Positions 2,579 through 30,902 of a stretch of DNA of 64,000 nucleotides are shown one piece after another; the first letter of the stretch is position 1, and every line of letters starts with the position of its first letter. The stretch lies in the NCBI GenBank assembly GCA_976226885.1, contig OZ320313.1:38998001-39062000 (forward strand), written 5' to 3'. Made by a program: the position numbers and the translations under genes. The notes beneath the pieces are model-generated. The model saw only the letters and a list, made by a program, of their open reading frames with translations, was not told where the DNA came from and searched no databases. The stretch is from Iphione sp. A-MEVVRFRX5 (lineage: Eukaryota).

Positions 2579-2783
2579 ATGCCTAAAAGTTGCGAGGCGG
2601 TAGGTTGTACGAACCATGCGCGAAAGCTAGACAGAAAAGTGCGATTTTACACGTTTCCGAAGCGTCACCGGGAGGCCCAAAGAAGAGATTTGTGGTTGAA
2701 GGCCATTCAGCGGGTCAACAGGGACGGATCGCGTTGGAGCCCCACCCGGCATCTCGTGCTGTGCAGCGAACATTTTGTGTCAG
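2579..2783 (+). CDS. THAP zinc-finger protein, coding exon 1
   Basis: MPKSCEAVGC...FYTFP...RRDLWLKAI...W.P...LCSEHF matches the C2CH THAP pattern. Ends at a CAG|GTAAGT donor (phase 1). GC-rich promoter-like DNA lies upstream (about 2390-2570). Confidence 0.92.
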
Positions 2784-3402
2784 GTAAGTGCACTCTCTTA
2801 CCGTTTTCTGGTCTGCCTACAGTGTACAATCCACTGGACCCTTCATTAGGCTAAGTTTGTAGTAAGTTTTGAATGAACCAACCCGGGACCGGAACAGGTC
2901 CTAGTACTACGTGCACCCCGGTCTGTGTAAAAGTGCGAGACACATTACACACATGGACGTCCTTGTACCAGACCACAAAAGAAAATGATCTGAGAAAAAG
3001 TCCTACGTCATTCTTTGAATTTATTTTTGTTTTCCAAGGTACTGAATAAGTAACCTCATTCAAATTATATGATGGATCGGAAAACTTAGGCTCATCACGG
3101 CTTGAGGTAACTAGGTCGGACTCTGATGGAGTGGAACAGGTGCTCTCTGCTTGTCAAGTGGCAAGAGGGCAGACACCAGGGGGGTACTGCCAGTTGTAAG
3201 AATTTTGTTCATGTTCACTGTACATGTACCTTTAACATGGAATTAGATATTCAGTTATCATATCTTCCTGGGATAGTATACTACCATCTGTTATTGAGAA
3301 TTGAGAGACCAGAATACCTGGGGTTGCCCCTACTTTTTTTTCATTTCAAATAGGTTTCTTAGGTCTTCCTGTACATAGGAGACAGAATTCTATACACCAT
3401 GG

Positions 3403-3490
3403 CCTTTGTAACAGGCTATGGACCAATCTGAGTTGGGGCTTAATTCCCTTTGTAACAGGCTATGGACCAATCTGAGTTGGGGCTTAATTC
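3403..3490. repeat. perfect 44-bp tandem duplication
   Basis: CCTTTGTAACAGGCTATGGACCAATCTGAGTTGGGGCTTAATTC x2. Confidence 0.95.
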
Positions 3491-4201
3491 ATATGCAACA
3501 ATTGTTGGCTATACATATATCGAAAAATGACTAATGGTACATAATTTCTGCACCTGCTTTGTGTAATGAGATAAAAACTATCCAGGGCATATCATTGTTT
3601 TAAATACCCTTTCAGAGTACAGTAAATCTTAAAGCTCAATAAGTAAGTAGCATTACCTATGCATGGATAGTTTTTTTTATCCGGAACAGGTATTTGCTCA
3701 TTTGTTTATTAGCATACCCGTAGAGAGCAAAAAGATTTTAGGCCTCAAAACTGTTAATCAAATAGAATATTTTGCCATTCTATCGGGCAAATTTGATGTT
3801 CTCGTTTGTGGAGTTGAGTATCATACAGGAAGAAATGCCCTTTATTACCAGTGACATTCTCAAACATGTTTAGTTCATACACCGTTTGATATTATTGATA
3901 TTTATTCTCTGTCAGTTTCACGTTAGTCACTCCTTACGTTTGAAGCAACATGGATTCAATAGAACCACATTCACCCAGTCTAAACATGAATAACTTTTCC
4001 TGTTAGTGTAGAAAGTGCATAATACGGCTTGAAAATGCAACACAACTAACAGTAATAAAATGAAATATATCTGGTATGAAGTCCTCTGCAGCGTATAGCC
4101 GTTTGTTTTCTCTCCTCTCAGCTCTGGAAAACTCAGTCCTGAACATTTATCTGTTTAATTTACAGACTCCTCGGATTCACGGTGATCTCATTCTCTTTCA
4201 G

Positions 4202-4301
4202 GCAGACCGAATAAGAACCCGGAACATGTGGACTACGTGCCTAGTGTCTTCAAACGTCAGGCAGGGGTGAACACGAAGCGCACGTCCTACCAACCCAAAC
4301 G
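4202..4301 (+). CDS. THAP protein, coding exon 2 (completes the THAP domain)
   Basis: Acceptor TTCTCTTTCAG, phase 1 matching exon 1. Reads GRPNKNPEHVDYVPSVFKR..., with the DYVPSVF motif typical of the THAP C-terminus. Ends at donor CG|GTATGA (phase 2), or reads through to TGA at 4327-4329. Confidence 0.85.
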
Positions 4302-4566
4302 GTATGATGGAGCACACACCCTGGCGTGAACCAGTACTATAAAGTCAGCTCTAGGAGAACCCGATATACAGTTGTACTTCACAAATAAAGCCTGATCTGT
4401 CCCTCTCTGTGCTTAACTCCTATGCTTTTTTTCGTAATGACAAAGGTTTACTGAAAGCTGTCAGTGGGGCCCTAACGTCTTGTCTTCCGCCCTTTAGCAC
4501 CACCTTTCACCACGCATCACCACTTACTCTACAATATCCCTCTCCAGTTCCACTTATCCAATGCTA

Positions 4567-4570
<4 letters not shown>

Positions 4571-4652
<82 letters not shown>
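4571..4652. repeat. (CT)n microsatellite, about 41 units
   Basis: Direct observation. Confidence 0.98.
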
Positions 4653-4653
<1 letters not shown>

Positions 4654-4714
4654 GTTCATCTCTATATAGCTGTATTTATTTTCCCATGATATACACAATA
4701 AACCATTAGACAGA

Positions 4715-5780
4715 CTATTATACACTCGGGATGTTTCTCTACTAACATCTCGCACATTTTCGGGACTGCAGGCAGTTCGCAGGATACCTTTGAAACAAAA
4801 GCGTTACATCGTGGGTGGTCCTAAAACATGATGGTATGTCAACTCCTTAAACGGCGCTTTGCATGAACAACTTCTATTAGAAACACCATATGCAAATCTC
4901 GAACACCGTTATGGCCACTCGAGTAACCGCCACATAAGCCACGATGTTCACGACAGATCAGGACAAACGCAAAATTCATACACTTTACACATCAAACAGT
5001 CTCTTGTTTGGCGAAGGTTTATAAGTGAGATTTTCAGGTCTGGGCCACACAGTTGAGATGTACATATACTTGGGAACATCCCTGATCATCTCAGCAGGTG
5101 GGATACTTTCGTCAAGTTAAGAGTGAAGTTTTGAAGCATGACCTCATGTTCCTTGATACCGAAATCAGAGTAGATGATCCAAGAATTATAATAACCGTTA
5201 TGTACCAGCGAATCCACTGCTGTATTTAATTTTCTACGCTACTGTTTACACCAGGACTCCATTGGAAAAAGAACATCACGTACCGGTATGGACAATATTA
5301 TAGGTTGCGCACAACCTGCTTGCCTGCTGGTGGTTTCACCAGTGTTGCTGTAGGAAGCGGCAAACATCTGACGTACGGAAGGACTTTCCTCCAAAAGACG
5401 TGGTCTATTCTTGTGGCTGAGTTAACCACTTAGATGTAGATTCCTTCTCACTGCAACAACCCAACAGTGACAGACATAGCCACCGAAGGGTCCGCAATCT
5501 AGTGACTTTCACCCTGTTTATAATGATCAAAACGTAGGGTCACAGGTAATTGGGACTTTACGGCTATATTATGTACTGTAGAAAAGACCTCAGCAGAAAT
5601 GGAATGTCATCACAGTCTTCTAAATGACGCCCAGCATGAGGGACATTATGGTATTAACCAGATCATACAAAAGAGAACCTCACCAAGCACCCTGTGGAGA
5701 TATTTCCAACCTACTAAATTGTATGGATATCACCCAAAGTTACCAAAAAAGCGCTCAGTAAACTCACCTAGCAAAATGTA
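4715..5780 (+). mobile_element. degenerate Penelope-like retroelement RT fragment
   Basis: Broken frames give TRDV..TNISH, MQISNTVMATRVTAT*ATMF (cf. QxxGTAMGTxMAPxYANLF), WRRFISEIF (cf. WxRYIDDIF), MFLDTEI and KKNITYRYGQYYRLRTTC, in the order expected for a PLE RT. Confidence 0.7.
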
Positions 5781-6679
5781 ACGTTAGGTGTAATTTCGAT
5801 GTACATATTTTCACAGCCATGGTGTTGCGTCTTCACTTTTTTTTTTTCATAATTCTTGTTAATAACCTCGGTGTTTTCTTGTAGCCATTCACTATGCAGT
5901 GAATGGATGCATGGAAATTAAGTCTAAGTTGTTCACATTGCAGCAGTATATATTGTATCACATGCAGATGCAGCAGGCAATCCTGTTGAAGGCCGCTAAA
6001 AAATGCCCGATGGAGGAGCTCCAAAGCCACTGTCATCGGATCAGCGTGTCTTGTATGTAGGCATTTCAATGCCAATAGCCACACAGGATACAACGACACT
6101 GAGAAAAACAGTGGTTGCGTCATAGGTCATACTAGGGTGTGTTTTCAAATTTGATGTCCCAAAGACCTGCCCCATACGATCCATAAATCAAATCTGCACA
6201 GGTTTTACACAGGTTGTGTCATTAATGCATAAATTGTGCCTTTTTTTCACGCAAATTCGCACTTTCATGCAGGTTTCTCATATTTTACCTCATGCAGATT
6301 TCTACAAAGATACCACCACGCATACAGATACGCAGGCTTAGCTGTGAATCTAAATCGCCCTTTCATGTACTTCATTGCTAAAACAGATACATGGGCTGTG
6401 AATATTTGGACCTGTCCCAATCTGTAACAGTGTCCATATTTTTAATCAAAATACACAGACCTGTGCATGGAATCACTACACTGTTTAACGATAGACACCG
6501 GAAAAGATGCAGTGACTACAAAGCATGGCCACATGGAAATTCAGCCGTACGTAGACTTCAAATTAGTATATGTACTAGGACTAAATCATACCCAATTTGT
6601 TCGTCTTTGGCGAAAATGATAAGTCGTACCATTGTAATTGTTATTAGGAGACCTATGATAAAAGGCCCTTATACGTCCA

Positions 6680-6900
6680 CTGTCGCCTGTTGGTAGGCAG
6701 ACTCGTGTACGGACTCTGGGAGGCTCTTCGGTCGGCGACAGGCCCTAATGAAGTCAGATCTGTGGAATATCTTAGTGACACAGGACTTTCCCATGAGATT
6801 TCTATTGTTTTCCACCAGCATGCTGTAAACTGAGTTGAAGGTAATGACGAGAATGCTGTTAGGTGTGTCGTTATGTCGCTCGTCTCGGCGACAAGAATAT
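6680..6900 (-). mobile_element. possible second Penelope-like fragment (RT-endonuclease linker)
   Basis: ILVITFNSVYSML...ACRRPKSL resembles the PLE linker motifs LVxTYHP...AYRRPKNL. Confidence 0.4.
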
Positions 6901-8106
6901 GTATCTGGCAATAGCACCGGCGTTTAGGTAGATTTTATCACTCTACAGCAAACTTTATGGAATTCACTCAAGATGGTCATTTAAATCTGAGACATGCACA
7001 GAACTCGTTCTATATTCCAACGACTCCGTGACCCTGTGTTCAACAGAACCAGGGGAGATGCCTCCAATTTGGTTTTCCCTCTTTCGACCCAGTCTTTCGA
7101 TTCAGCCTTTTTGTGCACCACGTCAGCTTTTGGTCTAACCAAAGACCTTAGGTTATAAATTCTAGAAGTGATTCTGTAGTTTGTCGGTGAGCACGCTTTA
7201 GACAGGAACATGAGGGAACAAGGCTCCTACCGGTCCCGGACAGAGGCCACGAGGTCACTTCAATGAACATTTTAAGGTTGCATGCCACTTTTTGCTGATT
7301 ATTCCTCAGGTCACAGGTCATTTAAATAAAGACATCAGGTCATCAGGTCACCTCTGAAAGGCACGGTAGGTGGCAGGTCGCACAAACCCCTCGATCATTT
7401 ATCTTAATATAATAGTGTAGGGGGTGGGGTTTAAAGAATACATTTTTTCCGTCAGGCTCACTATCCTTCCATCAACCTTTTAAAGATTAACTGATTGTCC
7501 CGTGTCCTTCCGAAAATGCAGTTTTATCAAGATAAACCTCAGTTCAAACTAGATGTTGGTGCATAGTGTGCAGTGTCTAAACGTTATAAATTTCTTGGAA
7601 GCGGTGTGTATCACTGCAGGGGTGATAATACTCTTCCATCAGATTTGATAATCATTAATATTATGGCATAAAGTGTTCGACAGGCAAAAACTGTACACTA
7701 ACAGATTGTGATATACACTCGAAGGCAAAGTAGGCATGGCTGCAGGTGGGTATATTGTAACTACAGGTATTCGGCGCATTCGTGGGCATGTGTATATAAT
7801 TTGCGATTAAGTTTGCAGCGTTGTGTGGCCAGCACAGACTGTAGTGGTGCGCTTTGATTTGTTCCGATCTTCGTTCCGACACAATGTGAACTGGTTTTTA
7901 ACGACGTCGCTTCGTTCCTCCATATTACGGGCTGTGAGGATGGGTTAGATTGTGGATGGGTACTGAGGGGAGGGAGAGGTTATTGTTTGCCAGACAGGTT
8001 TGGAGAGATCGGGGACCAGTGGGCGCGGGGGGATGGGGGAAGGAGGGAGGGAGGTAGCGCCCGTTGTTGAACGCTTGCGTCGATAAAGTGCGCCAAAACA
8101 CGTTCG

Positions 8107-8120
8107 GTTGCCATGACAAC
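8107..8120. promoter_or_regulatory. RFX X-box motif GTTGCCATGACAAC
   Basis: 13/14 match to the palindromic X-box GTTGCCATGGCAAC, in a CpG-rich patch just upstream of an ATG and a splice donor. Confidence 0.55.
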
Positions 8121-8140
8121 GCAACACCTCGCGTCGAGAA

Positions 8141-8192
8141 ATGGAGCTACTTGAGAGCCCAACAGAGACCGTCCCCCTCCCCCTGCCAGCAA
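8141..8192 (+). CDS. candidate short first exon (MELLESPTETVPLPLPA)
   Basis: ATG 20 bp after the X-box, and donor CAA|GTTAGT (phase 1). The downstream partner exon was not identified, and an N gap follows. Confidence 0.3.
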
Positions 8193-8193
8193 G

Positions 8194-8196
<3 letters not shown>

Positions 8197-8226
<30 letters not shown>
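8197..8226. repeat. (GT)15 microsatellite
   Basis: Direct observation. Confidence 0.95.
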
Positions 8227-8227
<1 letters not shown>

Positions 8228-8269
8228 CGAATTAGTGTATACATTTGTGTCATTTTGTGCTAATAGTAG

Positions 8270-8476
8270 NNNNNNNNNNNNNNNNNNNNNNNNNNNNNNN
8301 NNNNNNNNNNNNNNNNNNNNNNNNNNNNNNNNNNNNNNNNNNNNNNNNNNNNNNNNNNNNNNNNNNNNNNNNNNNNNNNNNNNNNNNNNNNNNNNNNNNN
8401 NNNNNNNNNNNNNNNNNNNNNNNNNNNNNNNNNNNNNNNNNNNNNNNNNNNNNNNNNNNNNNNNNNNNNNNNNNNN
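8270..8476. other. assembly gap (N run)
   Basis: Run of N bases. Confidence 0.99.
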
Positions 8477-10409
8477 TGCTGCGGCCCCTGGTGGTGCTAT
8501 GCTGCTGAGATCAATACAATGCCCCTTAACTCCTCATATTGATGTGTGATTGCGTGTGCATGTCATGAGTAAAGTAATGTTTATGTGTTAAGAGTGAGTG
8601 CCATTATAACACTAAATATATATAAAATGTTGCCTGAACGTAGGTCCAGCCCATGGAATTATAAAGAACTATGTACTAATTTCATCTGTGTTTATATTTG
8701 GAAACAGTATGAAGCAAGATGCTCATTGATACATATTCTGTGTGTGAAAATACATAATCATTGAAATTACATGCTGCATGTGGCCCTACTTTTGCAGTGC
8801 TGAGTAGGGATATTTCTTTGTTGCATAACACAGTCCTTTACTGTGATTAATCAAATAGAACTTCCCTTACTGATGATTCTAGGGAGTGGGATAAGGCCTA
8901 AACCAAAAATATCTGAGATTCTGGTAACCCAACCGACCCTGATTTTTGCCCCAGTAGGAATTCCCTTAAAATTTTTAAATGGATTTATTTTCATCAATAA
9001 TGGACCAAGAAAGACATGCAATGGCTCATAGTCTTCCCAAGGTAGGTTTCACATGTATCTGTTGTTCACGCTCAGGGATCTGTTTGGGTGATTGCTTAAC
9101 AACCCAAACCAAGGCTTTTAGTTATTCTTGTCACATGTGCCCGTTAGCATAACTATCAGATCTGCTTGCATTTCTCCTATCCATCTGGGATGGGTTATAA
9201 TGCATATGATACATTCCACTATTTTTTGTACCAGCGATATTCTCCAAGACTACTAAAAACTACAGGAAGGAATTATTGTATAATACAAAAAAAGATTAGT
9301 ACAGACTCCTGATGCCTCCTAGACCCTGCCACAACAAAAACAATTGAATATATCAAATTAAACTATGATTTTTACTTTAAAAATGACCATCTTGGAAATA
9401 CATCTGGTACAAAAAATGGTGGAATATATCATATAGATGCGTTTTAAACAGGAATGTACTGCAGAAGAACATCTGGTATTAAATCATTCATGGACCTTAA
9501 ATGGAATGTCTAATAAATAATGCACCATTATGTGTGAAAAGTCAACAGATACATTTGAAACCAGCCATTGGGCCCTAACTTTCATGTGAACATTGTTATA
9601 TTCAAATCAGAACAGTAGAACCAAAGATGTAGTCCTTTGAAGTCTCTGCACATGCTATTCTCACAGAAAACAAAATCTAAAAATGAAACAAAGTAGCGTA
9701 CTGATCCTTATTTTTCAGAATTTTTGTAGAGGCAATTGCTTCACAGCAGCAGTTTACAGTGGTCCCCTGACCTATATAAAGGTGAGGGTGCCTGCTATGG
9801 AGGTGAAAAGAATTGGGATGCTCCACTTGGTCCTATTATAATATTAAGTTCCGTGCTACTCATTTGGCATTTATTTCAATCCTAACTCTGATATTATAAA
9901 GAGACGTGTAAAACCGCCTATAGATTAAGTGGCTTCTTTTAGGCATGTGATTGGTGAGAGAGAGGGAGAGAGACAGAAAGACAGACAGTCAGACAGAATT
10001 ACTAGGAGTACATGTAAAGGGAAATGGGAGGCAGAGGATAGAGACAGGTGGGGCAAGTAGAGATAGACAGTGAGGAGGGTTGGAGAAGCAAACACATAGA
10101 GAACGTCATTGCCGAGTAATTTGTTTAGTAAGGGTTTGCCTTGTGAATGTACGCATCACAGTCACCTAAGTTGGGATAAACGGTCACAGTCATGCATGAT
10201 GAAAGTCATGGGCACCGTCACACAACACAGTAGTGAGCGACTGGTTACGTGTTTGCACATTATGGATATCTAAATGTGAATGTGTACAATGTATACATGT
10301 ACTGAACTCCATGATCTTCCTCTCCCCCTCTGAAAGTTACGATGTGTAGCTCATATTCATTTATTGTCTTCATATGTTCACCACACGGGGCTTTGCCGCT
10401 TGGTCTTTC

Positions 10410-10515
10410 TATGGTATGTTTATGGACAACTGGTTACATCTATTGTTTGATATGATGTCGATAATATATGGTATATTTATGGACAACTTGGTTATATCTG
10501 TTGTTTGATAAGATG
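10410..10515. repeat. diverged ~57-bp tandem duplication
   Basis: TATGGTATGTTTATGGACAACTGGTTACATCTATTGTTTGATATGATG versus TATGGTATATTTATGGACAACTTGGTTATATCTGTTGTTTGATAAGATG. Confidence 0.85.
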
Positions 10516-12548
10516 ATCTGGGAGCAGAATAGTGCCAACCTCACCACACATCTCATTTCTCAACATTCCCCTTATTGTCGTGCTTTATTCATCTTCATAT
10601 CATACTACCCACATAGTGAGGATTTAGGTTTACCTGGATACACACACTTAGTGCATCTCTTAACCCAGAGAGAATATAGATTTAAAAAATGAAGCTGTAA
10701 AGTAAGATGGGACACAAAGTAATGATCAGACTAGATAACCAGGTGCGTCATACAGACGTCACGTGATGCGCATGCTTACGCACACATAATACACTACATT
10801 TGGGCAGTGTATACATGCACACGGATATACAAACGTATTTGGTCACGTATGTGTGAGCGGGCAGGTCTGGGCTTGTGAAACATAATTATGGTAGCTGGGG
10901 AGCAAAGAGGTGGGAGGGGCCTGTTGCTGGGAACTGTGCACACCTTACAACTACATCGATACGTTGTCAGTGGCAACTGAGGCCCGTTTACACCGTGGCG
11001 GTTCATTGTTGCTCCAAAGTCCCTCTCACCGGCGCAAAATGCAGGTAATTTTAGCACACTGCACAACGCGACATCTGGTGTTAGTTTTCAGTACATGGTG
11101 CCCATTGAAACTAAGAAACCTCATCAATATACAAGTAACAAGTTGTGTATTGCTGGATTACATGCTTTCTTTAGCCGTCCCCTTGATGACCTTTGTTCTA
11201 CTGACACAGTGTCTTATTTTTTCCCTCATCTTGTCACCACCTCTATGAACAGTGGTTGGTCCGAATATCACATCAACTACCCATTTCTGTCTGCCACACT
11301 ATCTGTCCGTTTTTCTATGTGTGTCTGTCCTTCCACCCCAACGGTGTATAGAGTTGCCTTAGCGTATGTGTAACCTAGCACCCTCCCCTGTGTGACATAG
11401 TGGCTGGTCATCGTTAACTGAAAGACCTACAATGGTTTCAAACTGAACGGAGACCTCAGCAAGACTCTTTTATTGTCACCCACATATTAACGGTACGTAT
11501 GTGGGAGTACAATTTGAAATACCCTGACTTTAAACTGACTTCTGAGAACCAGCTGCAACAGTTCCATGAATATCGAAGTGGAGTTTCCTCAGGCGCTAGG
11601 CTAGGTTGGCATATACGGTGAATGTGGTTTAAAAGCCCACACCGTAAGGTGCTGCCTACTCCTATTGTTTACTTTGGTGGCTCGTCGAAGACTAGGGAGA
11701 TTAACGTTTAGTCCGTAGCAGTAGACTACGTCAGCCTGTTCACCATGGCGGCATCCACACAACCACACCGACGTGGCCTATTCACGAAGGCACAAGGGGA
11801 CTTCTGGCGCCTGGCATGAGGTGGGAGATCTCGCTTATCGTGCTTCATACCGTGGCAGTAGGAACTGCAGTACCATACACTCCATACCATGTAGTTCAGT
11901 CTAGGACCGTACCAATCAACCTCTGTCGTTACTGGAAGCAATCCATACACTGTCTTGGTAAGGTTCTTTCGGTGATCCGCAGGGTCTTCGATCTCCACGT
12001 TTACCGGAGACGAGAGAAGCGCACAGACCTTTCAGTGTAGGACCCTTTTTGACAGTGTGCGTTAGTACAGTACTCTCCACTAGGGGAATATGCTGACGTC
12101 AGACATCCCACTGTACATGTATAAGCATGTACTGAGCGATTTTATGAAAACTTTGCAAAGCCGTTTAATTTCTACTCATGGTGTCAATGTAGCCATGGTA
12201 CGTGTATATTAATTACACTTTAAATGATAACATTTTTATGATCACAGGTCACACTCTATTTCATGGTGTAGAAGGTTGCATTAAGGGTTACGCTTACTGG
12301 GTCATAGCATATGGAAGGTCTGATAGATGTTTTGATATCTGAAAAATGTAGACTTCTGCTATATAATATATATTCATATCTCATCAAGTATGTGTTTGTC
12401 GTTAACATGGCAGTGTCAAAAGGTATGCAGCATGTATGTCTCAGAACAACCTCCTATTTCCAGTAGTATATCCCGTCTCATGTTAACAGCTCAGAAAATG
12501 CTAGATTTTGGTTAATAACAAGAGCCTTTTCTTTCTGTGTCATTACAG

Positions 12549-13136
12549 CCGGCACATTAACCAGGATATGCTGAAGTCGGAGCCGGTCGCTGTCATGTCC
12601 TCTTCCAAGGACGACCCCATGGATCTGGGGCCCTTTCTAAAGGAGTATGTCCTTAACAACCCCTTCACGTCCTCCCCAAGCCCTCCACCTGCCCCGCGGA
12701 CACCGGCTCCAGTCCGGACCCTGCTGCCAGCACGGACCCGGACGTCTTTCCTGGGGATCAAATCTCGGCCGGTGGTGGTGCCCGCCCAGTCCGTGCCAAT
12801 CAAATTGGAGAGGGCTTCCCCGAATGACACGCCGACGTGGTCTGGCGGCGGAAGCGCCCTGAACACAGCGGTCACCACAGTTGGACAAATCCCGGTCCTG
12901 GCAGTCAAAGCGATTCCCTCTCCGGCACCCATAGTCCACCAGGTGGCTCCCATAGTCCAAACCCCCACCGCCGATGTCGCTAAGCCTGCCAATGAAAACG
13001 AGACTCCAGTGCTGCTTCCGGTTCCGCCGGGTGGGGTCGTCGACACCCCTAAAGCGCACATTGGCAGTAACCGAAACTTTGCTGTCATGCTGAGGGAGAT
13101 GAAGCTACCGCACAAGCACATTAAGATAAAGAAATG
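12549..13136 (+). CDS. internal exon, Pro/Val-rich region of a putative DNA-binding protein
   Basis: Acceptor TTTTCTTTCTGTGTCATTACAG (phase 2), an open frame of 195 codons, and donor TG|GTGAGT (phase 2) that fits the next exon. Confidence 0.85.
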
Positions 13137-13545
13137 GTGAGTGTGAGTGACTTGTATACAGCCTCTCCTGGAGTAGAATCACTGCAGGAAACGTCTGTTT
13201 ATCCGAATGTGCGTTGTCTGTTTTCGTGATCGTACGTGCATGCCTATATGTGTGAAATCAAGATTACAGAATGAATGAGACTGACCACAAGGTCAGCATT
13301 TTGAGCACTCTGTCTTTCAAACTGAAGATAACAAATATGAGAAATGTATCTCATCGATAGCCTTTCTAGTTTATTCCTCTGCCCAGAAATGCCTTCAGAA
13401 AATTTCACAATACTTTCAATCCTTAGAATAGTTATACATGTGGTGGTAATAATAATTCACCCAAACCGGTACGCCGTATGCATATTTACCTTCCATCCCT
13501 ATACGCACACTGAGTCTTAAATGCCATTGCTTTGCTCACTCTCAG

Positions 13546-13744
13546 GCTGCTGTCCAACTACCGGCATGCTGTCAGCAGCCCCGTGTGGTTGTCCTCCGAT
13601 GACCTCCTGGACCATGCGCATCAACTCTTCACAGACCTGAAGAGCAGTGTGCTCAGCCGCATCATGAAGGTCACCTTCCCGAACTGCCACAAGGTCATCA
13701 ACAAATACGGCTACTTCTACATCGGACTGGTGCAGAGGCCCGAG
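13546..13744 (+). CDS. exon encoding a divergent RFX-type winged-helix domain
   Basis: Acceptor CTCTCAG and donor GAG|GTGAGG. After splicing it reads WLLSNY...LSRIMKVTFP...YGYFYIGL, which aligns by eye with the RFX DBD (WLLDNY...FGKLIRSVF...KYHYYGL). Confidence 0.75.
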
Positions 13745-14113
13745 GTGAGGAACACACAGCGTACTAGATGTTCATACATGCACTGCTGATGCCTGGGTCA
13801 GATGTGAGAAGTACTTGAGGAATGGTTCTGTCCAGAGTCAAGCGTGCAAAATTGTGTATTTTTACGCGACGAACACTTCAAAAATGGTTTTCTTATTGTA
13901 CTATTTTGGTTTAGCTGAAATTCTACATCTGGTTGTGCTGGACAATGAATATACATGTGTATTTCTACTAGTAAATCTGAACTGTAAAAACAGACATGCA
14001 TGTACAAACAGGTGTGCAGACACGCATGCATACACACGCACATACGCACACACCCACCAAGTCAGTTTACAAATGTCCTTAAACATCAAGCAATGCAACT
14101 TCTGTTTATACAG

Positions 14114-14293
14114 AAAGCGCACTACAACGATGAGTCGCTCTGCCAGGCGGCAGAGGCCGTAGCTTCGGGTCAGCTGACCGCCGAGATGGCGTCTCAGGTC
14201 CACGGTTTCACGACGGAGTTGATCAACCGATTCGTCGTCTGGTTCGACACCATCAATGACACTTTACCTGATGATGACACAGCAGAGAAAATG
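14114..14293 (+). CDS. exon encoding a Pipsqueak (psq)-type HTH
   Basis: Acceptor TTCTGTTTATACAG and donor ATG|GTAAGT, both phase 0. YNDESLCQAAEAVASGQLTAEMASQVHGF matches the psq pattern YxxExLxxAxxAVxxGxMSxxxAAxxYGI. Confidence 0.75.
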
Positions 14294-16309
14294 GTAAGTC
14301 CCAGAGATGACAATGTGGTAACGAGTCTAGGCGCACATGTATTTAGTCCGTCTCCAGTCTCCTACACAGCTCATCTCTTTCTGTAAGCACACTTAAAAGG
14401 CGTTAACGTCTTGCGGATATCAGATGGTGAAATTTGGATGTTTGTCTTCGCGAGGAGGGTTGGGGTTAGGAGTTAACTGAACAGATGCATCTGGACCTCC
14501 TACAGTCATATATGTATTGCTCAGTTAGGTTGGAGCCCACAGGTTCGCGTAACGGGTAACTCAGGATGTATAAGCTGTGATCTTCTTGGACTGTCCACCA
14601 CAGCTGTCAATCCAAAAGTACAGGAAAGACTAAAAGCATTGCTGGCGTGCCCACCACCCTGTTACAGCAAGATATTTTAGCACTTCTTGTGACGTGACAG
14701 CAGGCTGTGCGCCAGTGAGAAAAAACGGTAGTGTCTGCAACAGTGTTGCAAAATACATCAAACATCGCTTTATAACGGTGTTCGCAGTTGACACGTTTTA
14801 TGTATCTGAAATGGAACTAATTGCCTCAATCCAGCTTTCTGTAATATATATGGACGTTTTAAGCCAGACATTTTTATCATGCAAGAACGATAATGCTCTA
14901 TTTGCATGTACCCATGTTTTCGTGTCCCTGTGTGAGTCTTTCGTGGTGCCGTGCTTCCATTTTTTTTCTGCATCTGTGCTTATCAGCTGGAGTGCTACCA
15001 CGCACCTGTACTTTATGTTCAAACATGGATCCATGTTTAAGATTTAGACATGTCCCATTTTCTCTTGGTGCATATATCTGTGTTTTGGCCTTGGGTGGTG
15101 CCATGTCTTGGCATCTATGCTTATCAGATGGAGTACTTTCATGTACCTGTATGCATATGTTAAAAGACGGATTTGTGCCCATGGAAAAAAACAAGGAACA
15201 CACATATGGGCACATAGAAATTTGCCTTAAACTAGACGCAAGGTTGATTTTTTTCCCCACCCTGTCTTCTGACATTTACCCCACAAAATGCCCGATACAT
15301 GATGTCTACCGTCTATACGTAGGATATTTTCGCCTTTTGTTATCAAAAAAGATTATGAAGGCCATCAATGCAAGCTGATAATATCGCATATGATCCCGCA
15401 ATAGAGCACCATGTACAGTAGGACGGCAGATACAGATTATTTTAATGGCTAGCGCTTAGCGCAGTTACAGCAATATTCTTATGGTGGAGGCAGTGTTATC
15501 AAGGCAATGTTAAACTGATCAAGGTAGCGTTCATGCCAAGATGCTGGTAGCTTATCAGAGAGTACAAATTTGGGACTGTGAACTGTACAAGTGCGACCTT
15601 TCCCACTCCCTGTTATAAAATTAAAAACTCTTCCTGTCAGAGTAGGCGGAACGTGAGTGCAGTGGGGACGAGGCAATTAAGGTTCTTTTGGTCTGAGGTA
15701 GTCTGAAGATAAGGTTCTAAGTTTCTTAATTTGCACTTCGTCAGGAAACACCTGCACTGCACCGTCGCTTCGTTGTGTGGAAATTGATTTCATGTCTTTC
15801 TTTAGTAGCTCTATAAGCATGGTTAGGTATACAGAGATTTTATATTTATTTCCTTCTAAGGCGACTTAATTAACTTCTGAAGTATGGCTAGGCCATTTTT
15901 CTGTCTGTTCTCCCATCAGTTTTGCGTATTCACATGCCAAGCTCTTGTTTCGAGATCACTGTACAGCTGCCAGGTGTACGCTACATTATATTTTACGTTC
16001 AGCCGGTCCTTCCTGCTCAAGGGGCTACACGTATATATATATTATGGTGTACCTACATGAGCTGTTTTACAGTCACGTGAATCATATGCTGTCAGTAGTG
16101 AGAGTTAGACGTGTTAGAGTGCACCTGCATGTTGTCATATTTTTACTCTGCATGCTGACGAGTCCTTCCTTCTGACTTTAGAACAGGGACTCGGATCCAG
16201 ACTGGGTGAGTGCAGTCTTAAACGGTCCACCTCTCTGCCCCAGTCTGTTAAGGATAAGGATAGCATTCGCTGTCCCTCCCGTGCCATGGCTCTCTGTGTT
16301 TTTCATTAA

Positions 16310-16444
16310 NNNNNNNNNNNNNNNNNNNNNNNNNNNNNNNNNNNNNNNNNNNNNNNNNNNNNNNNNNNNNNNNNNNNNNNNNNNNNNNNNNNNNNNNNNN
16401 NNNNNNNNNNNNNNNNNNNNNNNNNNNNNNNNNNNNNNNNNNNN
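16310..16444. other. assembly gap (N run)
   Basis: Run of N bases. Confidence 0.99.
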
Positions 16445-17453
16445 CTCTGTCCATCTATCTGCTTCCCCATCTCTGTCAGTCTTTCTTGAATCTCTTTTTT
16501 GTCCTTCAGTAATCGACCTGATTTCTGTTCCTCTCTTTTATTACTTACTCTTCCTTTGCAAGGTCTGTTTCATCGCTTCTACCTTTTTTTTACAATGTTC
16601 ATAGCGTGCATCTACTAGCGAGTTCTAGGCGGAATAAGATATAAATAGAAATCAGCCGCACTGACTCAGGTTCCTGTTGTGTACAAATTCTAACCAAATT
16701 GTTCTAACCAGTTTGTTTGATTGTCAATCGTTGTGATTAGTAAATGGATGTCATGCGTATGTGAGAGTGTGTATACGTTGTATCAGGCTGTGTGTGCGTG
16801 AGTACAAAACACGTGGGTGCCTTATTGCAGAGCTCACCTCTCTTTCTCTTACGTTCAGCCGCGTATTCTCAGAGAGTTCACGATTTTAGAGCTTAAAATA
16901 CTTACCCTTAGTTTCATGCTGGCTTGTGATCTTGCTGGTCCATGATATCTTTTTTTTCCAAAGGTTCGTATCAAACCTCTACACTGGATATACTCTGCCG
17001 ATCTAAGACTGAGCAGTTTCATATCTTGGTCTAACATCATAATCAGTATTTTTGTACTTTCAAGGTTTGAAATAAAATGATTTCGGAATTCGCTTTGAAA
17101 TATTAGGAGACTGCTGCCTAAATCCAATTAATCAATTTTGCATAGTGACATTTAAAACAAAAATAACTTGATTTCTACATTTCTAAAGTTATGTCATGGG
17201 TTGTTAACCACTAAAATTACCACGCTTAGTTGCACTCAAGAAATTACAGTCTTATCAGCATTTAGACTCTTCATTGCAGTAAGTAGGTTTAGCTTATAAA
17301 GAAGAGTTGTCATACAGGCAGTATTAGTGCGAGGGGCCGCAAATCTTGAAATTGTTTTCTCCATAATTCCTCACAGCCTTTACTAGCTACCACCCGTACA
17401 AAGAAACCATACTGATGTTTCATGAACTTTAACGTGTCTTGACCTCCTTACAG

Positions 17454-18704
17454 GTGATGAGTGACTCCGAGTCTGAGTCAGATGATAACGTCGCATCAGG
17501 GACCTCGGAGAATCGGTCCAGCATCAGGTGGAAGTTACGTCAGAAGGCACGTGCCAGGCTGAATACCAAGATGGAGCCGAGGTCACTCTCCTCGTCGCCA
17601 CCTTTAACGGCAGCATCAACAGCCAATATATCCACTACGCATGCTTTGTCATCAGCAAAGCCGCACCAGCACAAGTCTGCAGACGGCGAGTGGCGGCCCC
17701 CGCGTGTGCAGTTGGTTGATTCGGCAGGCGCACCCGGTCACCCACGCCGGCTCAGCTCTCGACTGAAGGCACGAACCAAGAATAAGGCAGGAGGCCACCA
17801 AAAGGAGAACGGCGGTGCTAATCTAGTGAAAGCCGAGGGCGGCACGGACATCGAGGACGGTGAGCAGGAGAGAGCAGATTCTGGTCCGGCCGAAGGGGAG
17901 GGCACTGATGATTCGGGTGATTTTGATGATTTCTACGATGACGAGGAGGAGGAGGACGACGACGACGAGGCAGACATGGACGATGATGACCTCAGCAATA
18001 ATACACAGTCTACTCCAACGGATGGGTCCACCACATCCTGTGTGGCCTCCACAGCCATAGGCAGCTTCCAGGTTCGTGTCAAAACCGAGCCCTTGGATCC
18101 CGAGTGTGAGGAAGACGAGCAGAACAATAACCAGCGCCCTTGCAGTAAGAGCCCCCCTCAGTACGGCAGGCAAAAGGCTCTCTTGAAACAGAAAGAGGGT
18201 GAAGGGGAGGGTGCTAATGAGACTGGGAATACCGCCTCGTTCCACACACTGCGTAGTCTACTGAATGAGTCGGGCCACGCAGGAGGTGGTTCCCAGAAAC
18301 GCTCAAGAAGTCCCCAAGGAGAAAGTCCAAGCAAGGTGCAGAAGTGCAGTCCAGGAGAGGGCAGCAGTAACGGCAATGCCCCTGGTGGTAGTGGGGGCAG
18401 TCCGGCAGGCAGCCGATCACAGAGTCTAAACTCGGTGGTGGATCTGCTCACAATGAAGCAGGAGCTGCAGCAGACACGTGACTTGCTCACAGCGAAGGAG
18501 AACGAAAGTTCGGCCCTCGAGCGCAAACTCGCACATGCACATTCGGAAATCCAGTCTTTGCAGAGGACACTCTCCATTCAGGAGACGACTCTGTCTGACC
18601 TCGCTACTGAATTCTTTGAGCTTTCGAGCAGTTTTATGAAGATAACCCACAAATTCAAGCAAGCGCTCACAGATGCAAACATCACTAGGTGTCAGCACAC
18701 GTGA
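17454..18704 (+). CDS. terminal exon: acidic/Ser-rich low-complexity region plus C-terminal coiled coil
   Basis: Acceptor CTCCTTACAG (phase 0) and a 416-codon open frame to TGA. Contains a D/E tract and a heptad-rich C-terminus (LLTMKQELQQTRDLL...LERKLAHAHSEIQSLQRTL). Confidence 0.88.
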   Translation: MMSDSESESDDNVASGTSENRSSIRWKLRQKARARLNTKMEPRSLSSSPPLTAASTANISTTHALSSAKPHQHKSADGEWRPPRVQLVDSAGAPGHPRRLSSRLKARTKNKAGGHQKENGGANLVKAEGGTDIEDGEQERADSGPAEGEGTDDSGDFDDFYDDEEEEDDDDEADMDDDDLSNNTQSTPTDGSTTSCVASTAIGSFQVRVKTEPLDPECEEDEQNNNQRPCSKSPPQYGRQKALLKQKEGEGEGANETGNTASFHTLRSLLNESGHAGGGSQKRSRSPQGESPSKVQKCSPGEGSSNGNAPGGSGGSPAGSRSQSLNSVVDLLTMKQELQQTRDLLTAKENESSALERKLAHAHSEIQSLQRTLSIQETTLSDLATEFFELSSSFMKITHKFKQALTDANITRCQHT

Positions 18705-25339: not shown

Positions 25340-25526
25340 TGTTGCGGGCTCCACTCAGCGGAGCCCGCTGTCGGCGGAGGTTGAGAATTTGGGGCTCCGC
25401 CCGGAGTAGCATTCTGTATATAAGTCGGGCCGGGCGGAGCTTCGTTGTCATTAGTGTCCTGTCTCTTAAGGAATAAACTTCATCAACTGTTATCTTGGAG
25501 TCATGTCTCTTCGATCGGGGCGAACA
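25340..25526 (+). repeat. 5' LTR (187 bp)
   Basis: TGTTGCGGG...GGGCGAACA, with TATATAA at 25417-25423 and AATAAA at 25472-25477. Differs from the 3' LTR at 3 positions. Confidence 0.95.
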
Positions 25527-26756
25527 ATTGGTGGCAGCGGTGGGATACCTGCCCTAGGGGCTGAGGCGGAAGAGGAGGCGGAGGTAGTCAAGCTCCGGGC
25601 GGAGTCGGCGGAGCCCGCCGGGTCAGCGGAGGTCGCCGAAGAGCTGCCGGAGCCCGCCTGGCTCCGCCCGGAACCCGCCACTGACTGGGACGCACAGTCC
25701 ATGGAGGGGAGCCAGCCTCTGGGTAGCGGGGATGCCCAAACAAGAGATGAGGTGGGGCATGGGACTGACGAGGAAGAAAGAGAGCACGGAGCCCCTACCT
25801 CATCCGCCCCACACAGATTCAATGAGGACACTGATGACCACCCTCCTCCAGAGGAAGACGAAGGAGAGGGGGAGCCGACCGACCAGGCAGCTGAACCGCT
25901 TTGGACTAGCTTTGTCCGGGAGTTGAGTTCTGCCCTTCGACCGGAAGGAGGAAGTAAGAAGAGCCTGGTGAAACCTGACACTTACGGTGGGAGTACGCCC
26001 TTGTGGGACTTCCTACAACATTTTGAGCTGATGGCCTTGGCAAACCACTGGGGGACCGGAGAGAAAGCCATCCAGTTAGGCATCACCTTGAGGAAGTCGG
26101 CTCGGGCGGTCCTACGGAGTTCGGGGATCGACGTGGAGAAGCCCCGAGCTTACCAGGAACTGGTGGCCGCCCTCACGGAGAGGTTCCAGTCCAAGCACCA
26201 GACAGATGCATACATCCAGCAACTGAAGGGGCATCGGCAGGGGAAGGCCGAGGCCCTGGCGGACCTTGCAGACGAAATTGAGCAATTGATACAGCTGGCC
26301 TACCCCGAGGCGAAGGGGGCCTGGAAGGACCGGATGTGTCGCGAATACTACGTCGGGGCCCTCAGCAACGAGAAAATTCGGAAGTGGGTGACCCAGGCCC
26401 GAGTGGCAACCTTCCGTGAGGCGTTGTCAGCATCGCAAGTAGCGGAATCTTACTATCAGCACAAGTCCGAAAGGGTTGGACCCAAGCGTGTGCATAAGCT
26501 GGAAGTGGCCACGGGGGAAGCTCCGACCAACAAGCCCACCCCCGGGACCGAGGCTACAGCGGCGGGCTTCGAGCGACTGGAGCTCCTGCTCCAACAGCTA
26601 CTGGCAGGCCAACAAGGGGTGGAGAAGGAGAATCGCCGGCCGAATAACAAGAAATGCTTCAATTGCGGGGAACTCGGGCATTTCAAGCGCAACTGTCCCC
26701 AGCCCTTGAAGGAGCAACCGTCGGGAAACGGGGTGGCGGCCGCCCCTCGCCAGTAG
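25503..26756 (+). CDS. gag: Gag (capsid-like region and CCHC zinc knuckle)
   Basis: 417-aa ORF with KPDTYGG..W.DFLQHFE...N.W and CFNCGELGHFKRNC. The first ATG lies in the LTR; the next in-frame ATG is at 25701. Confidence 0.92.
   Translation: MSLRSGRTIGGSGGIPALGAEAEEEAEVVKLRAESAEPAGSAEVAEELPEPAWLRPEPATDWDAQSMEGSQPLGSGDAQTRDEVGHGTDEEEREHGAPTSSAPHRFNEDTDDHPPPEEDEGEGEPTDQAAEPLWTSFVRELSSALRPEGGSKKSLVKPDTYGGSTPLWDFLQHFELMALANHWGTGEKAIQLGITLRKSARAVLRSSGIDVEKPRAYQELVAALTERFQSKHQTDAYIQQLKGHRQGKAEALADLADEIEQLIQLAYPEAKGAWKDRMCREYYVGALSNEKIRKWVTQARVATFREALSASQVAESYYQHKSERVGPKRVHKLEVATGEAPTNKPTPGTEATAAGFERLELLLQQLLAGQQGVEKENRRPNNKKCFNCGELGHFKRNCPQPLKEQPSGNGVAAAPRQ
25529..25546 (+). promoter_or_regulatory. 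primer-binding site complementary to tRNA-Leu (AAG/TAG type)
   Basis: TGGTGGCAGCGGTGGGAT is the reverse complement of the eukaryotic tRNA-Leu 3' end ATCCCACCGCTGCCA-CCA, and lies 2 nt after the LTR. Confidence 0.88.
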
Positions 26757-29700
26757 AGAGGGCGGCCAGTCCCCGACCCCACTTGGAAGAACATCTCCGG
26801 ATGATTCAGCTGTCCTGTGGGCGGGAAGTCACTCTGGAAGGGGAGAGTGGCCCCACAACGAACATCACGCTACCTAGTGAAATCGATGATCGGATAGTCC
26901 CCTGGTTAGTGGATACCGGAGCGTCGCTGACCCTGCTGTCGGAAGAAGTCGCCGACACCCTGCCGCTCGGAGAATTGGAGCCGACAGTGGGGCGGATTTT
27001 GTGTGCAGACGGGAAACCCCTACGAGTGAAGGGGTGGACGAGGTTGAAGGCGAGTTTCCAAGGGATCGAGCTGGAAGTCAAGGCTTGGGTTGCCCAAATC
27101 GACTGCCCCGCCATCTTGGGGCTGGACACGCTTCGCAAATGGAAAGCACAGGTGGACACGGAGGGGGCCGCACTGCGGGTGCGGGTCCCCGAGGACAACG
27201 GCGCGGGTGGATGCCGGGCAGAGTTGGCGGAAGATTGCCACCTGGACGGGAGGAGCGCGGTGCAGGCCCCCTTGCGATGGGCAGGGCTGGAGACCGACAC
27301 TGGACCTGTGGTGGTGGAAGCCTCCCCCGAGTGGGAGGGTCGCTCGGGGATGCTACTGGCACAGACGGTGTGCCAGGTGGGAAGTCAGTCCGGAGTGGCG
27401 GAGATAACCAACCCTGGCCCCGTGGGGCGTCGACTGAGAAAGGGAACCGTTGTCGGCAGGGTCCAGCGGGTGGATGGGCCGGTGCAGGCCGTTCCGGAGT
27501 GCGAAGAGGTGGCGGACGAGGACGTGGAGCTAGGACCAGCGCTCAGGACCCTGCTAGAGCGCCTACCACCCATGACTACAGATGAGCGGCAAGGGGTCGA
27601 ACAGATGTTGCAGCGTAACGCGCGCTGTTTCCAGGAGGACGGGCAACCACTTGGGCACACTGACACGGTTCAGCATCGGATTGACGTACAAGGACATGCC
27701 CCTATCCAGCAGAGGGTACGCCGCCTTCCCCCGGTGAAGAAAGCGCTGGTACAGCAAGAAGTGGACCGGATGCTGCAGCAGGGGGTACTAGAGGCCTCTA
27801 CCAGCCCGTGGGCGTCTCCCGTGGTTCTGGTCCGGAAGAAGGACCAATCCTGGCGATTTTGCATCGACTACCGTGCCCTTAATCGAGTAACAAAGAAGGA
27901 TGCCTACCCCCTTCCGCGGATTGATGAGACATTGGACGTGTTGGAGGGAGCACGTTTTTTTTCGGCAATCGACCTGGCCAGTGGCTATTGGCAGGTAGGG
28001 GTGAGACCAGAGGATCGAGAGAAGACGGCTGTTTGTACTCCAGGTGGGCTCTACCAGTTCCGGGTCATGCCCTTCGGACTGTGTAATGCGCCCTCCACCT
28101 TCGAGCGGTTGATGGAGGCGGTGCTCCGCGGCCTGGTTGGACAGTCTTGCCTGGTCTACCTGGACGATGTGATCATGATAGGGAGGACGGTAGAAGAAAT
28201 GACCCGCCGACTTGACGAAGTCTTCGGCCGCCTGGGGGAGGCCGGACTTAAAGTAAAGCCGCAGAAGTGTCAGTTGTTCCAGAGGGAGGTGGCCTATCTG
28301 GGGCATCGTGTGTCTGAAGAGGGGGTCCAGCCTGACCCTGAGAAGATCCGGGCCATCCAAGAGTGGCCTCCACCGCGCTGCATCACAGAATTGAGGAGCT
28401 TCATCGGACTGTGCTCCTACTACAGGAGCTTCGTGGAGGGGTTCGCAATGCTGGCGGCCCCTCTGCACGGACTCTTGGAGAAAGGACAGGAGTATCGCTG
28501 GGATACCGAATGTCAGCAGGCGTTTGAACAATTGAAGGGACGGTTGGTGATGGCCCCCGTCTTGGCGTACCCGCGACCGGAGGGACAGCTAGTGCTGGAC
28601 ACCGATGCGTCAGCGGCTGGAATCGGAGCCGTACTGTCACAAGAACAGCAAGGACGGGAGCGGGTGTTGGCCTACGCCAGTCGTAGTCTCGCGCGTCCAG
28701 AGAAGAACTACTGTGTCACCCGGAAAGAACTGTTGGCGGTAGTCTTCGGCCTGCGTAAGTTTCGCTCTTATGTTGGGGGGCGAAAGGTGGTCGTCCGGAC
28801 GGACCATAGTTCATTACGTTGGCTATGCAGCTTCAAGGAACCGGAGGGACAGTTGGCCCGTTGGCTCGAGGAAGTCCACTGTTATGACTTGGAGGTGATA
28901 CACCGCCCGGGAAGAAAGCACGGGAACGCCGATGGCCTTTCGCGAGTCAAGTGCCCCCAGTGTGGACGGGACCCGGAGGAGGATCTGCCGACCCTGGGGC
29001 AAGTCGCTACGGTGTTGGTGGCCCCTACTGCATTGGACTCCCTAGCCCAAGCCCAGAAGGCTGAGCCCGAAGTGGCGGCCCTCATTCAAGCCTGGGAGGC
29101 GGAAGAGCCCCTTCCTGGACTGACTGGTAGTGATTCCCCGGAGGGGAGGTGGCTGAAGAGCGAGTCACGGCGGCTGAAGATGAAAGACAATCTGCTTTGT
29201 CGACGCTGGGAGGCGGAGGACAGAACGCTGTGTTACCAGGCTTACGTGCCCCAGCCATTGAGGTACGACATCTGGCGTGAAGTCCACACGGGAGCGCTGG
29301 GAGGGCATCTCGGCGCCGAGAAGACAGAAGGTGCCCTCCGTCGGAAATATTGCTGGCCAGGACTCCGACGTGATGTGGAACGTTGGGTGAAGGCTTGCCG
29401 TGAGTGCCAGCAGCGACAGGATCCGGCTCGCCGGCACCGGGCTCCCCTTCAGCTTCGGGTGGCTCCGGCCCCGTGGGAGTTCGTAGCCGTGGATGTGTGC
29501 GGACCTTTCCCCGAGACCGAGCGAGGAAACAAGTACATCATTGTGGTGGCGGATCACTTTACGAAGTGGACGGAGGCGTTCCCCACTCCGGAGGTCACGG
29601 CGGCGAAGACAGCAGACGTCCTACTCCGAGAAATCATCTGTCGATACGGCCCCCCCCCGTATTCTTCATTCCGACCAGGGCCGGAACTTCGAGGCGGCAG

Positions 29701-30902
29701 TGATGCGGGAACTCCTACAGATGCTGGGCATTCAACGGTCACGCACAACTCCGTACCATCCCCAGAGTGATGGAGTCATCGAAAGGTTCAACCGCACCCT
29801 CTTAGGAATGTTGGCCAAGGTGGTCCGGGAAGATCAATCCGACTGGGACCTCCGAGTGCCCTTCGTTCTGGCAGCCTACCGGGCTACCCCGCACTGTACC
29901 ACCGGGTTCTCTCCGAACTGGTTAACCTTACAACGCGAGACCACGCTTCCGGTGGAGCTGATGGTGGGCAGCCCCCGAGACGAGCCGCAATCAGCTTCCG
30001 ACTATGCCAAGCAGATTAGGGAGCGCTACATTCAAGGCCACCAGTTAGCCCGGCGCCACCTACAGAAGTCGGCTGAGCATCAGAAGGATTGGTACGATCA
30101 GCGAGTTCGTGAGCAAGAATTCGACGTTGGCGATCAAGTTTGGGTCTACTCACCGATAAAGAAGAAGGGGCGGTCCCCCAAATTGCAAAGTCGCTGGTTA
30201 GGACCGTGGACGATTCAAGCCAGGCTCAGTGCTGTCATCTACCGCATCTCTCGAAACCAGAAGACTCGGGTTGTCCATGCAGATCTGCTAAAGAAAGCGA
30301 TCTCTCCTAGTTCAGAGGAAGAAGAAAGACTCGGGCGAGTGTGTGTCGTCACCCTGATGCCGGACACGGATGCGGCCCCGGGGGGTGCGGGCCAACCTAC
30401 TGTGCCCCCGCCCCGCTGGTACCGCTGTAGGCCTAAGACAACTGGCCAGCCGCCTGTGGTTCCACAGGAGCACCAGGGACAACAGGATGCCCCCGCCCCA
30501 GCAACGCCCTCCAATACGACGGATCCCCCAAGGCTGGGTGGACTTGGTGGCCCGGGAACTCCGTCTCCTGAGCGACCGGACTTGCCAAGTCCTGCTCCAA
30601 TCGCGGGAAGTCGCGGGACGGAAGAGAGGAGAGAAGCCAGGCCCACGCCCAGGGACCTACCATCGGGCATGGCAGAGACTGCGAGGAATCAGGAGGAGGT
30701 TGCAGAGACAGTATGGCGGACGCGCGGTGCAGCACCTGGTGGAGACCCTCTGGAGGAAGATCGGAGAAAGAAGACACCCAGCCTGGGGACGGCGACAGTT
30801 GAAGACGTCGAGCGGAACTCGCCCGGAGCCCGTGGCGGAGCACGCCCTAACGGGGTGGAGCCCGCCCGGAGCTCAGCCTCTGGGCGGGCTCCACCCCGTT
30901 AG
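26654..30902 (+). CDS. pol: Pol (aspartic protease, RT, RNase H, integrase), with one frameshift in integrase
   Basis: Motifs LVDTGAS, YLDD, DTDAS/TDHSSL/NADGLSR, HHCC zinc finger, D-D-E core (VAVDVCGP, HSDQG, IERFN) and GPW. One extra C in the C9 run at 29650-29658 moves the integrase core into the 29493-30902 frame. Confidence 0.93.
26723..26767 (+). promoter_or_regulatory. -1 programmed ribosomal frameshift signal
   Basis: Slippery heptamer G GGA AAC in the correct gag phase, an 8-nt spacer, then hairpin GGCCGCCC-CTC/GCCAGTA loop/GAG-A-GGGCGGCC. Pol is in the -1 frame. Confidence 0.8.

Follow-up and report, generated by a model that had tools for sequence, protein, structure and literature searches.

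The locus considered here raises the question of whether several unrelated DNA-binding folds have been joined in a single product. It lies in a 64,000-nucleotide stretch of the Iphione sp. A-MEVVRFRX5 genome (contig OZ320313.1, positions 38,998,001 to 39,062,000; hereafter the window), in which an earlier note, made from the sequence, had linked two exons encoding a THAP zinc finger to four downstream exons encoding an RFX-like winged helix, a Pipsqueak (psq) helix-turn-helix (HTH) and a coiled coil. We read the region, with a probability of roughly 0.75, as two adjacent genes on the same strand: a THAP gene (gene 1), and a second gene (gene 2) that encodes a domain of predicted RFX-type fold and whose product would be a dimeric nuclear DNA-binding protein driven through an X-box. 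The THAP domain very probably does not belong to the gene 2 protein, as judged from sequence comparison. Exons are numbered along the chain as first proposed, with exons 1 and 2 being the THAP exons (at 2579 and 4202) and exons 3 to 6 those at 12549, 13546, 14114 and 17454; the features are collected in Table 1.

Exons 3 to 6 are one conserved spliced gene, whose coding sequence (CDS) runs from 12568 to 18704 in four coding exons and specifies 732 amino acids. Contigs L003/L005 and L004 carry colinear homologues of all four exons, with amino acid identities to the window of 52 and 51% for exon 3, 86 and 85% for exon 4, 55 and 47% for exon 5 and 45 and 37% for exon 6, respectively, and a word search with the last exon matched only the last-exon open reading frames (ORFs) of three other species. 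At four more distant loci (L011, L012, L025 and L026, the last from Capitella) a homologue of exon 4 is present in every case. L011 and L012 also have the end of exon 3 and the part of exon 6 that encodes the coiled-coil end, L025 has the end of exon 3, and L026 has exon 5. Splicing is documented by a Logan contig (L024, 4317 nt) that matches the genomic contig L004 at 100% in four blocks with the introns gone, and is therefore a spliced transcript. Its ORF, a protein of 621 amino acids (P0018), contains the joins KKW/LL, RRPE/MQ and NLV/MSD, which are the same three joins as those proposed for the window. In this transcript exons 5 and 6 are contiguous, so the assembly gap within the last intron (16310-16444) should hold no coding exon; neither this gap nor the one upstream of exon 3 (8270-8476) touches an exon, and both flanks of each are colinear with two other species. 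Searches of the 1.18-Gb genome with exons 3, 4 and 5 returned no locus other than that of each exon itself, and the ratio of non-synonymous to synonymous substitution (dN/dS) for exon 4 is 0.038 relative to L003, a comparison in which synonymous sites are saturated. Gene 2 is thus single-copy and constrained, under strong purifying selection.

The same comparisons place the start of the protein within exon 3. In four other species homology to this exon begins exactly at its codon 7, which is ATG 12568, and in all five species the Met sits 4-14 residues before the invariant DDPMDLG, while the six codons between the window acceptor and Met 12568 are unconserved. P0018 starts at the orthologous Met, with a TGA two codons upstream; an in-frame stop at this distance is likewise present in the genomic contig L004 (TGA, after the acceptor) and in L012 (TAG). 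No THAP domain was found in P0018, in the L011, L025 and L026 loci, within 12.9 kb upstream of the orthologue in L005 or within about 9 kb upstream of that in L012; a weak THAP-like tblastn match in L005 (1363-1389) was rejected on reading. Orthologues with the full proposed architecture had been suggested as a check on the fusion, and those recovered carry all or part of exons 3-6, with no THAP domain in the sequence searched.

The structural identity of gene 2 rests chiefly on exon 4. An AlphaFold2 (AF2) model of this exon, built with 14 family sequences, has a predicted local distance difference test (pLDDT) score of 90.4, and in Foldseek the DNA-binding domains (DBDs) of RFX1 (1DP7, template modelling (TM) score 0.76) and RFX5 (8ZJR, 0.73) rank first, with the next match at 0.49. 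An independent structural alignment with VIA against 48,161 representative chains gave the same order, with 1dp7_P at Z 9.5 (root-mean-square deviation 1.7 Å over 63 of 66 residues) and 8zjr_M at Z 8.9, followed by the next chain at 5.5. Beyond the winged-helix topology that gene 2 has in common with the RFX1 DBD, short stretches of sequence resemble the RFX family (RFX1-8, DAF-19; PF02257). The last codons of exon 3 specify helix 1, which with the split Trp codon reads KW-LLSNY, so that the motif W-L-L-x-N-Y appears in gene 2 as it does in the RFX1-3-type domains of the same genome. Helix 3 aligns as LSRIMKVTFP in exon 4 with FGKIIRTVFP in RFX, giving a common pattern (F/L)(G/S)(K/R)I(I/M)(R/K)xxFP. 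Exon-4 residues R38, K41, K49 and K53 are conserved or nearly invariant across the 14 family members, and the first two of these are aligned with K and R, respectively, in the helix-3 FGKxxR of RFX. Exon 4 is therefore best described, on the basis of its model, as an RFX-type winged helix in fold that fails sequence membership of the family and probably reads DNA differently.

The differences from RFX are of two kinds. The wing of gene 2 is several residues shorter and reads K-V-I-N-K-Y-G, as opposed to the Arg-rich T-R-R-L-G-T-R-G of RFX; in RFX1 (1DP7) the Arg-rich wing (RRLGTRG) reportedly reads the X-box half-site. Gene 2 also has an HTH and a terminal coiled coil downstream of its winged helix, and no Pfam model, those for other RFX regions included, matches P0018. 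To our knowledge, the RFX DNA-binding domain is limited to few protein contexts (RFX1-8 and ARID2). The genome contains about 8 canonical RFX loci, and gene 2 is therefore additional to them. A canonical RFX1/2/3-type gene of this genome, at C10:86599245-86599697 (L015 1519-1950, minus strand), has its DBD exon in two tandem copies that share an open frame and are separated by about 250 nt; they read VQWLIENF...RRLGGR and VQWLIDNY...RRLGTR and are candidate mutually exclusive exons.

The domain encoded by exon 5 is a three-helix HTH, modelled with a pLDDT of 76.5, and is possibly psq-like. The Pfam model HTH_psq (PF05225) scores 12.9 bits on this exon relative to a cut-off of 20.4 (E 0.092) and covers profile positions 2-27 only; weak matches were obtained in three of the eight family members, the best at E 0.068, and a sequence search of exon 5 against the PDB gave chance matches only. 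The top Foldseek match is the HTH of LCoR (2COB; probability 0.98, E 0.24, 21-22% identity), for which VIA gives Z 5.8, the same as for TrpR, AlpA and small-terminase folds. Downstream of the HTH, the last exon contains a conserved basic stretch, an acidic tract, a SUMO-type V-K-x-E and an LxxLL motif that is kept only among the four closest orthologues, and it ends in a coiled coil in which 16 of 23 a/d positions are hydrophobic in one heptad register.

These elements invite comparison with the LCoR/LCORL/E93 (Mblk-1) psq-type co-regulators, which include the top Foldseek match of exon 5. The LxxLL of gene 2 and its PxDL-like N-terminal motif recall the nuclear receptor (NR) box and the CtBP motif of that family. 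The likeness is limited in that HTH_psq stays below its cut-off, the third helix is different, PMDLG misfits PxDLS at the last position, and the LCoR family itself has neither an RFX-type winged helix nor a terminal coiled coil. The invariant N-terminal DDPMDLGPF likewise resembles a CtBP-type PxDLS motif without fitting it.

Set against the earlier domain assignments, the part of the protein downstream of the THAP exons stands by itself as a conserved spliced gene (12549-18704) with a predicted RFX fold and a coiled coil that is borne out by its heptad regularity. The call of an RFX-like winged helix was strikingly right in fold as judged by predicted structure and finds no sequence profile behind it, and the Pipsqueak call holds as far as a three-helix HTH, its psq character remaining tentative with a score under the Pfam threshold and a structural match shared with other folds. 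Of the profile tests that had been suggested, THAP came out positive in Pfam, RFX negative by profile and positive by structure, and HTH_psq below cut-off.

Between the two genes lies a conserved non-coding block (8094-8150) that is the sole non-exonic blastn match of the region to L005 (9882-9938; 77% over 57 nt, E 1.5e-5) and is colinear with it. The block contains the X-box GTTGCCATGACAAC at 8107-8120, which fits the strict consensus GTHNYYATRRNAAC as no other site in the window does, and L005 carries the X-box GTTACCATGGCAAC at the aligned place. In L012 (7720-7850) a strict X-box and two one-mismatch copies occur within 130 nt, 1.4 kb upstream of the ATG. Genome-wide, the strong X-box core occurs 1442+1394 times, compared with 0-2 occurrences of a reversed control, and since the count is so far above the control, X-box sites in this genome are non-random. 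Donor-like GT motifs follow 70-90 nt past the X-box in the window, in L005 and in L012. The block probably marks the promoter of gene 2 together with a short non-coding first exon, and expression would then probably be driven by canonical RFX factors acting through the X-box at 8107-8120. A conserved X-box block thus precedes a gene that itself encodes a domain of RFX-type fold.

Taken in order, the gene 2 protein would consist of DDPMDLGPF, a Pro-rich linker, the RFX-type winged helix, directly followed by the HTH, then the basic stretch, the acidic tract, the SUMO-type V-K-x-E, LxxLL and the coiled coil. It would dimerise through the coiled coil, bind DNA with the winged-helix and HTH module, and act in the nucleus as a regulator of transcription; a dimeric nuclear factor that binds DNA and is itself controlled by RFX is thus the probable product.

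Several observations weigh against this reading. PF02257 (RFX_DNA_binding) gave no match even at E 10 with the 14 family members, or with full-length P0018; hhalign of the exon-4 family with the RFX DBDs of the same genome returned a probability of 2%; and sequence and profile searches of the PDB with exon 4 gave chance matches only, with no connection to RFX. The wing, with the consensus C-x-K-V-x-N-K-x-G, is shorter than in RFX and has two Lys only, without the Arg cluster, and any DNA target would probably be recognised in another way than that in which RFX reads the X-box. The divergent Capitella member (L026) and L025 have no upstream X-box; none was found upstream of L011 either, and for L026 the search extended to 10 kb upstream. 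Finally, what is said here of the 5' exon of gene 2 and of the use of the 4301 donor in Iphione sp. is a prediction from sequence, and the Iphione frame is open from the 12549 acceptor to Met 12568, with which a fusion isoform would be compatible.

The missing Arg cluster also bears on a different view of gene 2, in which it encodes a structural or scaffold coiled-coil protein of an RFX-controlled cilium or centrosome programme, with the winged helix and HTH serving for protein contacts. RFX factors are master regulators of cilia genes, and an upstream X-box is typical of such genes, as in RFX/DAF-19 targets; winged helices, moreover, often mediate protein contacts, and many that do not bind DNA are among the VIA matches. 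The product would nevertheless carry two consecutive folds of DNA-binding type with near-invariant Lys and Arg residues in helix 3 and the wing, its best structural matches are DNA-bound RFX domains that stand well above all others, and the acidic tract, basic stretch, conserved V-K-x-E and LxxLL are typical of nuclear regulators. We regard a scaffold role as unlikely, while giving it some weight, and favour a DNA-binding regulator.

The view from which the question arose, that the donor at 4301 is spliced to 12549 to give an 840-residue protein with THAP, RFX-like, HTH and coiled-coil parts, has the reading frame on its side, whether that protein is taken for the principal product or for an isoform that arises by read-through or fusion in this lineage. 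The six-exon chain is indeed uninterrupted in the phases given for it (1 at the end of exon 1, 2 at the ends of exons 2 and 3, and 0 at those of exons 4 and 5), its lengths sum to 205+100+588+199+180+1251 = 2523 nt, or 840 codons and a stop, and each exon boundary has GT/AG with good polypyrimidine tracts. The two genes share a strand and lie 8.2 kb apart, the GT at 4302 could serve as a donor, the acceptor at 12548 is good, the 19 nt leading up to the Met are free of stops, and it is common for THAP proteins to have a coiled coil at the C-terminus. A matching phase together with six open codons is nevertheless expected by chance with a probability of roughly 0.25, and the phase fit between THAP exon 2 and the 12549 exon is very probably an accident.

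The THAP exons, for their part, appear to form a complete gene. The domain is confirmed on exon 1 alone (Pfam PF05485, E 1.4e-11, 45.5 bits relative to a cut-off of 23.9), and C-x4-C ... C-x2-H and the terminal YVPSVF are readable in the two exons. Past the proposed 4301 donor the second exon reads ...KRYDGAHTLA-stop, with an AATAAA directly after. In the THAP paralogue L007 the corresponding sequence, ...SYKRYLRH..., also runs on through this Arg-Tyr, and the GT at 4302 therefore reflects no more than adjoining Arg and Tyr codons. Gene 1 (2579-4329) would accordingly be a small THAP zinc-finger gene with two exons, coding for about 111 amino acids and having its own stop and a candidate poly(A) signal. 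About nine paralogous copies of THAP exon 1 occur in the same genome at 38-53% identity (a family of about ten with the window copy), and an exon end after HF(I/V)(T/S)G is common to them (for example C1:157205969, C1:54808161 and C18:59004; L007-L009). Some of these paralogues carry stops (L008: TAG), and part of the family is therefore decaying. A fused product would have resembled THAP proteins of the THAP1, 5, 7 and 11 type, with an N-terminal THAP domain and a C-terminal coiled coil; here, in contrast, the THAP and coiled-coil genes are separated by comparison, and gene 1 seems to be little more than a THAP domain.

The THAP domain is very probably no part of gene 2, because conservation starts at Met 12568 in four other species, two of which have in-frame stops upstream, because no THAP was found in the orthologous mRNA or in the sequence searched in the relatives, because the THAP exon has its own end, and because the conserved X-box block separates the two genes. 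The single THAP-containing protein of the earlier note thus has phase in its favour and the comparative evidence against the 4301/12549 junction, and splicing of the two genes into one product is, in our judgement, quite improbable.

It is more improbable still that gene 2 is a recently domesticated or still mobile transposon gene with the THAP as a remnant of the same element. In favour of this, DNA transposases often carry THAP and psq-type HTH domains, retrotransposons lie nearby and the language-model look-alikes of exon 4 come from phage or mobile elements (a lead only). Against it, exons 3-5 occupy single places in the genome, purifying selection is strong, three internal intron positions and the upstream block are kept across species, orthologues have no adjacent THAP, and no catalytic domain or transposase-like product was seen among the ORFs of 1-22,000, which were read without a Pfam scan and without a search for terminal repeats. 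The earlier suggestion of a factor built by exon shuffling from transposable elements likewise finds no support, given the single places of exons 3-5 and a gene structure that is kept across species.

Table 1. Features of the two genes and of the region between them (positions in the window).
Feature	Position	Strand	Remarks
THAP gene, coding exon 1	2579-2783	+	Met to ...HFVS, donor GTAAGT; Pfam THAP
THAP gene, probable last coding exon	4202-4329	+	completes the domain (YVPSVF), reads past 4301/4302 to TGA 4327-4329
AATAAA, candidate poly(A) signal of THAP gene	4384-4389	+	55 nt past the stop; from sequence
Conserved non-coding block with perfect RFX X-box	8094-8150	+	candidate promoter/upstream control element of gene 2
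Candidate splice donor GTTAGT for a short, non-coding first exon	8193-8198	+	putative
Assembly gap between X-box block and 12549 exon	8270-8476		flanks colinear with L005; starts 77 nt past 8193
Gene 2, first coding exon of RFX-like gene (exon 3)	12549-13136	+	CDS probably from ATG 12568
Invariant DDPMDLGPF	12610-12636	+	in the 12549 exon, followed by Pro-rich linker
Invariant DTPKAHIGSN	13042-13071	+	in the 12549 exon, with helix 1 of the winged helix (...KKW)
Winged-helix exon (exon 4): strand 1, helices 2 and 3, wing	13546-13744	+	conservation, predicted fold
Three-helix HTH exon (exon 5; psq-like, tentative)	14114-14293	+	weak Pfam HTH_psq, AF2, Foldseek
Assembly gap inside last intron	16310-16444		orthologous transcript joins flanking exons directly
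Last coding exon (exon 6)	17454-18704	+	TGA 18702-18704
Basic stretch	17523-17561	+	last exon
Acidic tract	17919-17990	+	last exon
Invariant V-K-x-E (SUMO consensus type)	18078-18089	+	last exon
LRSLL (LxxLL)	18249-18263	+	last exon
Coiled coil	about 18423-18677	+	last exon

Database searches place gene 2 in an uncurated family. The window protein was scanned exon by exon, and the orthologue P0018 stood in for whole-protein scans. The Pfam scan gave nothing for exon 3, exon 4, P0018, P0011, P0012 or P0014, and word searches with P0018, either whole or with residues 140-300, gave no matches. An exhaustive HMMER search with the exon-4 profile returned 12 matches, of which 11 were short family ORFs and none was an RFX protein; P0013, also among the matches, was set aside as a spurious repeat protein. 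In the ESM Atlas the look-alikes of exon 4 are winged helices of phage or mobile elements, DUF3874 and Pox_D5, which we treat as a lead only. The only named relative is the Capitella teleta hypothetical protein CAPTEDRAFT_215619 (UniRef R7UXK3), which has the winged-helix and HTH module in common with gene 2 at about 38% identity and differs in being a divergent, uncharacterised gene model of 235 amino acids with no X-box within 10 kb upstream. A literature search for the gene 2 architecture or the Capitella protein found no paper. Gene 2 is thus a member of a conserved, uncurated and uncharacterised invertebrate family in which a predicted RFX-type fold occurs in a new architecture.

Elsewhere in the window, a Ty3/Gypsy long terminal repeat (LTR) retrotransposon occupies 25503-33750, with gag (including a zinc knuckle), protease-RT (reverse transcriptase)-RNase H-integrase and further ORFs, and a non-LTR retrotransposon lies at 39729-42606, with ORFs for an apurinic-type endonuclease and for a reverse transcriptase. 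At 61645-62353, tandem ORF-like segments with a plus-strand motif repeating at about 40 residues are probably a satellite or minisatellite.

At the level of method, the case shows that neighbouring exons with compatible phases can suggest fusion proteins that comparison fails to support. At the level of biology, gene 2 represents a constrained family, expressed as judged by the transcript in a relative, with a predicted RFX-type fold that is invisible to Pfam and stands behind a conserved X-box. A wider proposal, which we offer tentatively and at less than even odds, is that it founds an uncurated and probably spiralian (annelid/mollusc) branch of the RFX winged-helix superfamily, diverged beyond profile detection, in which the winged helix was fused with a psq-like HTH and with a coiled coil for dimerisation. 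The gene would be wired to the RFX network through its own conserved upstream X-boxes, where it might act as a downstream RFX effector or, if X-box-like palindromes are still read by its module, in feedback or competition with canonical RFX factors. If gene 2 binds DNA, it would be a lineage-specific node added to the spiralian RFX network, and it would be helpful in testing how an RFX wing can be reshaped.

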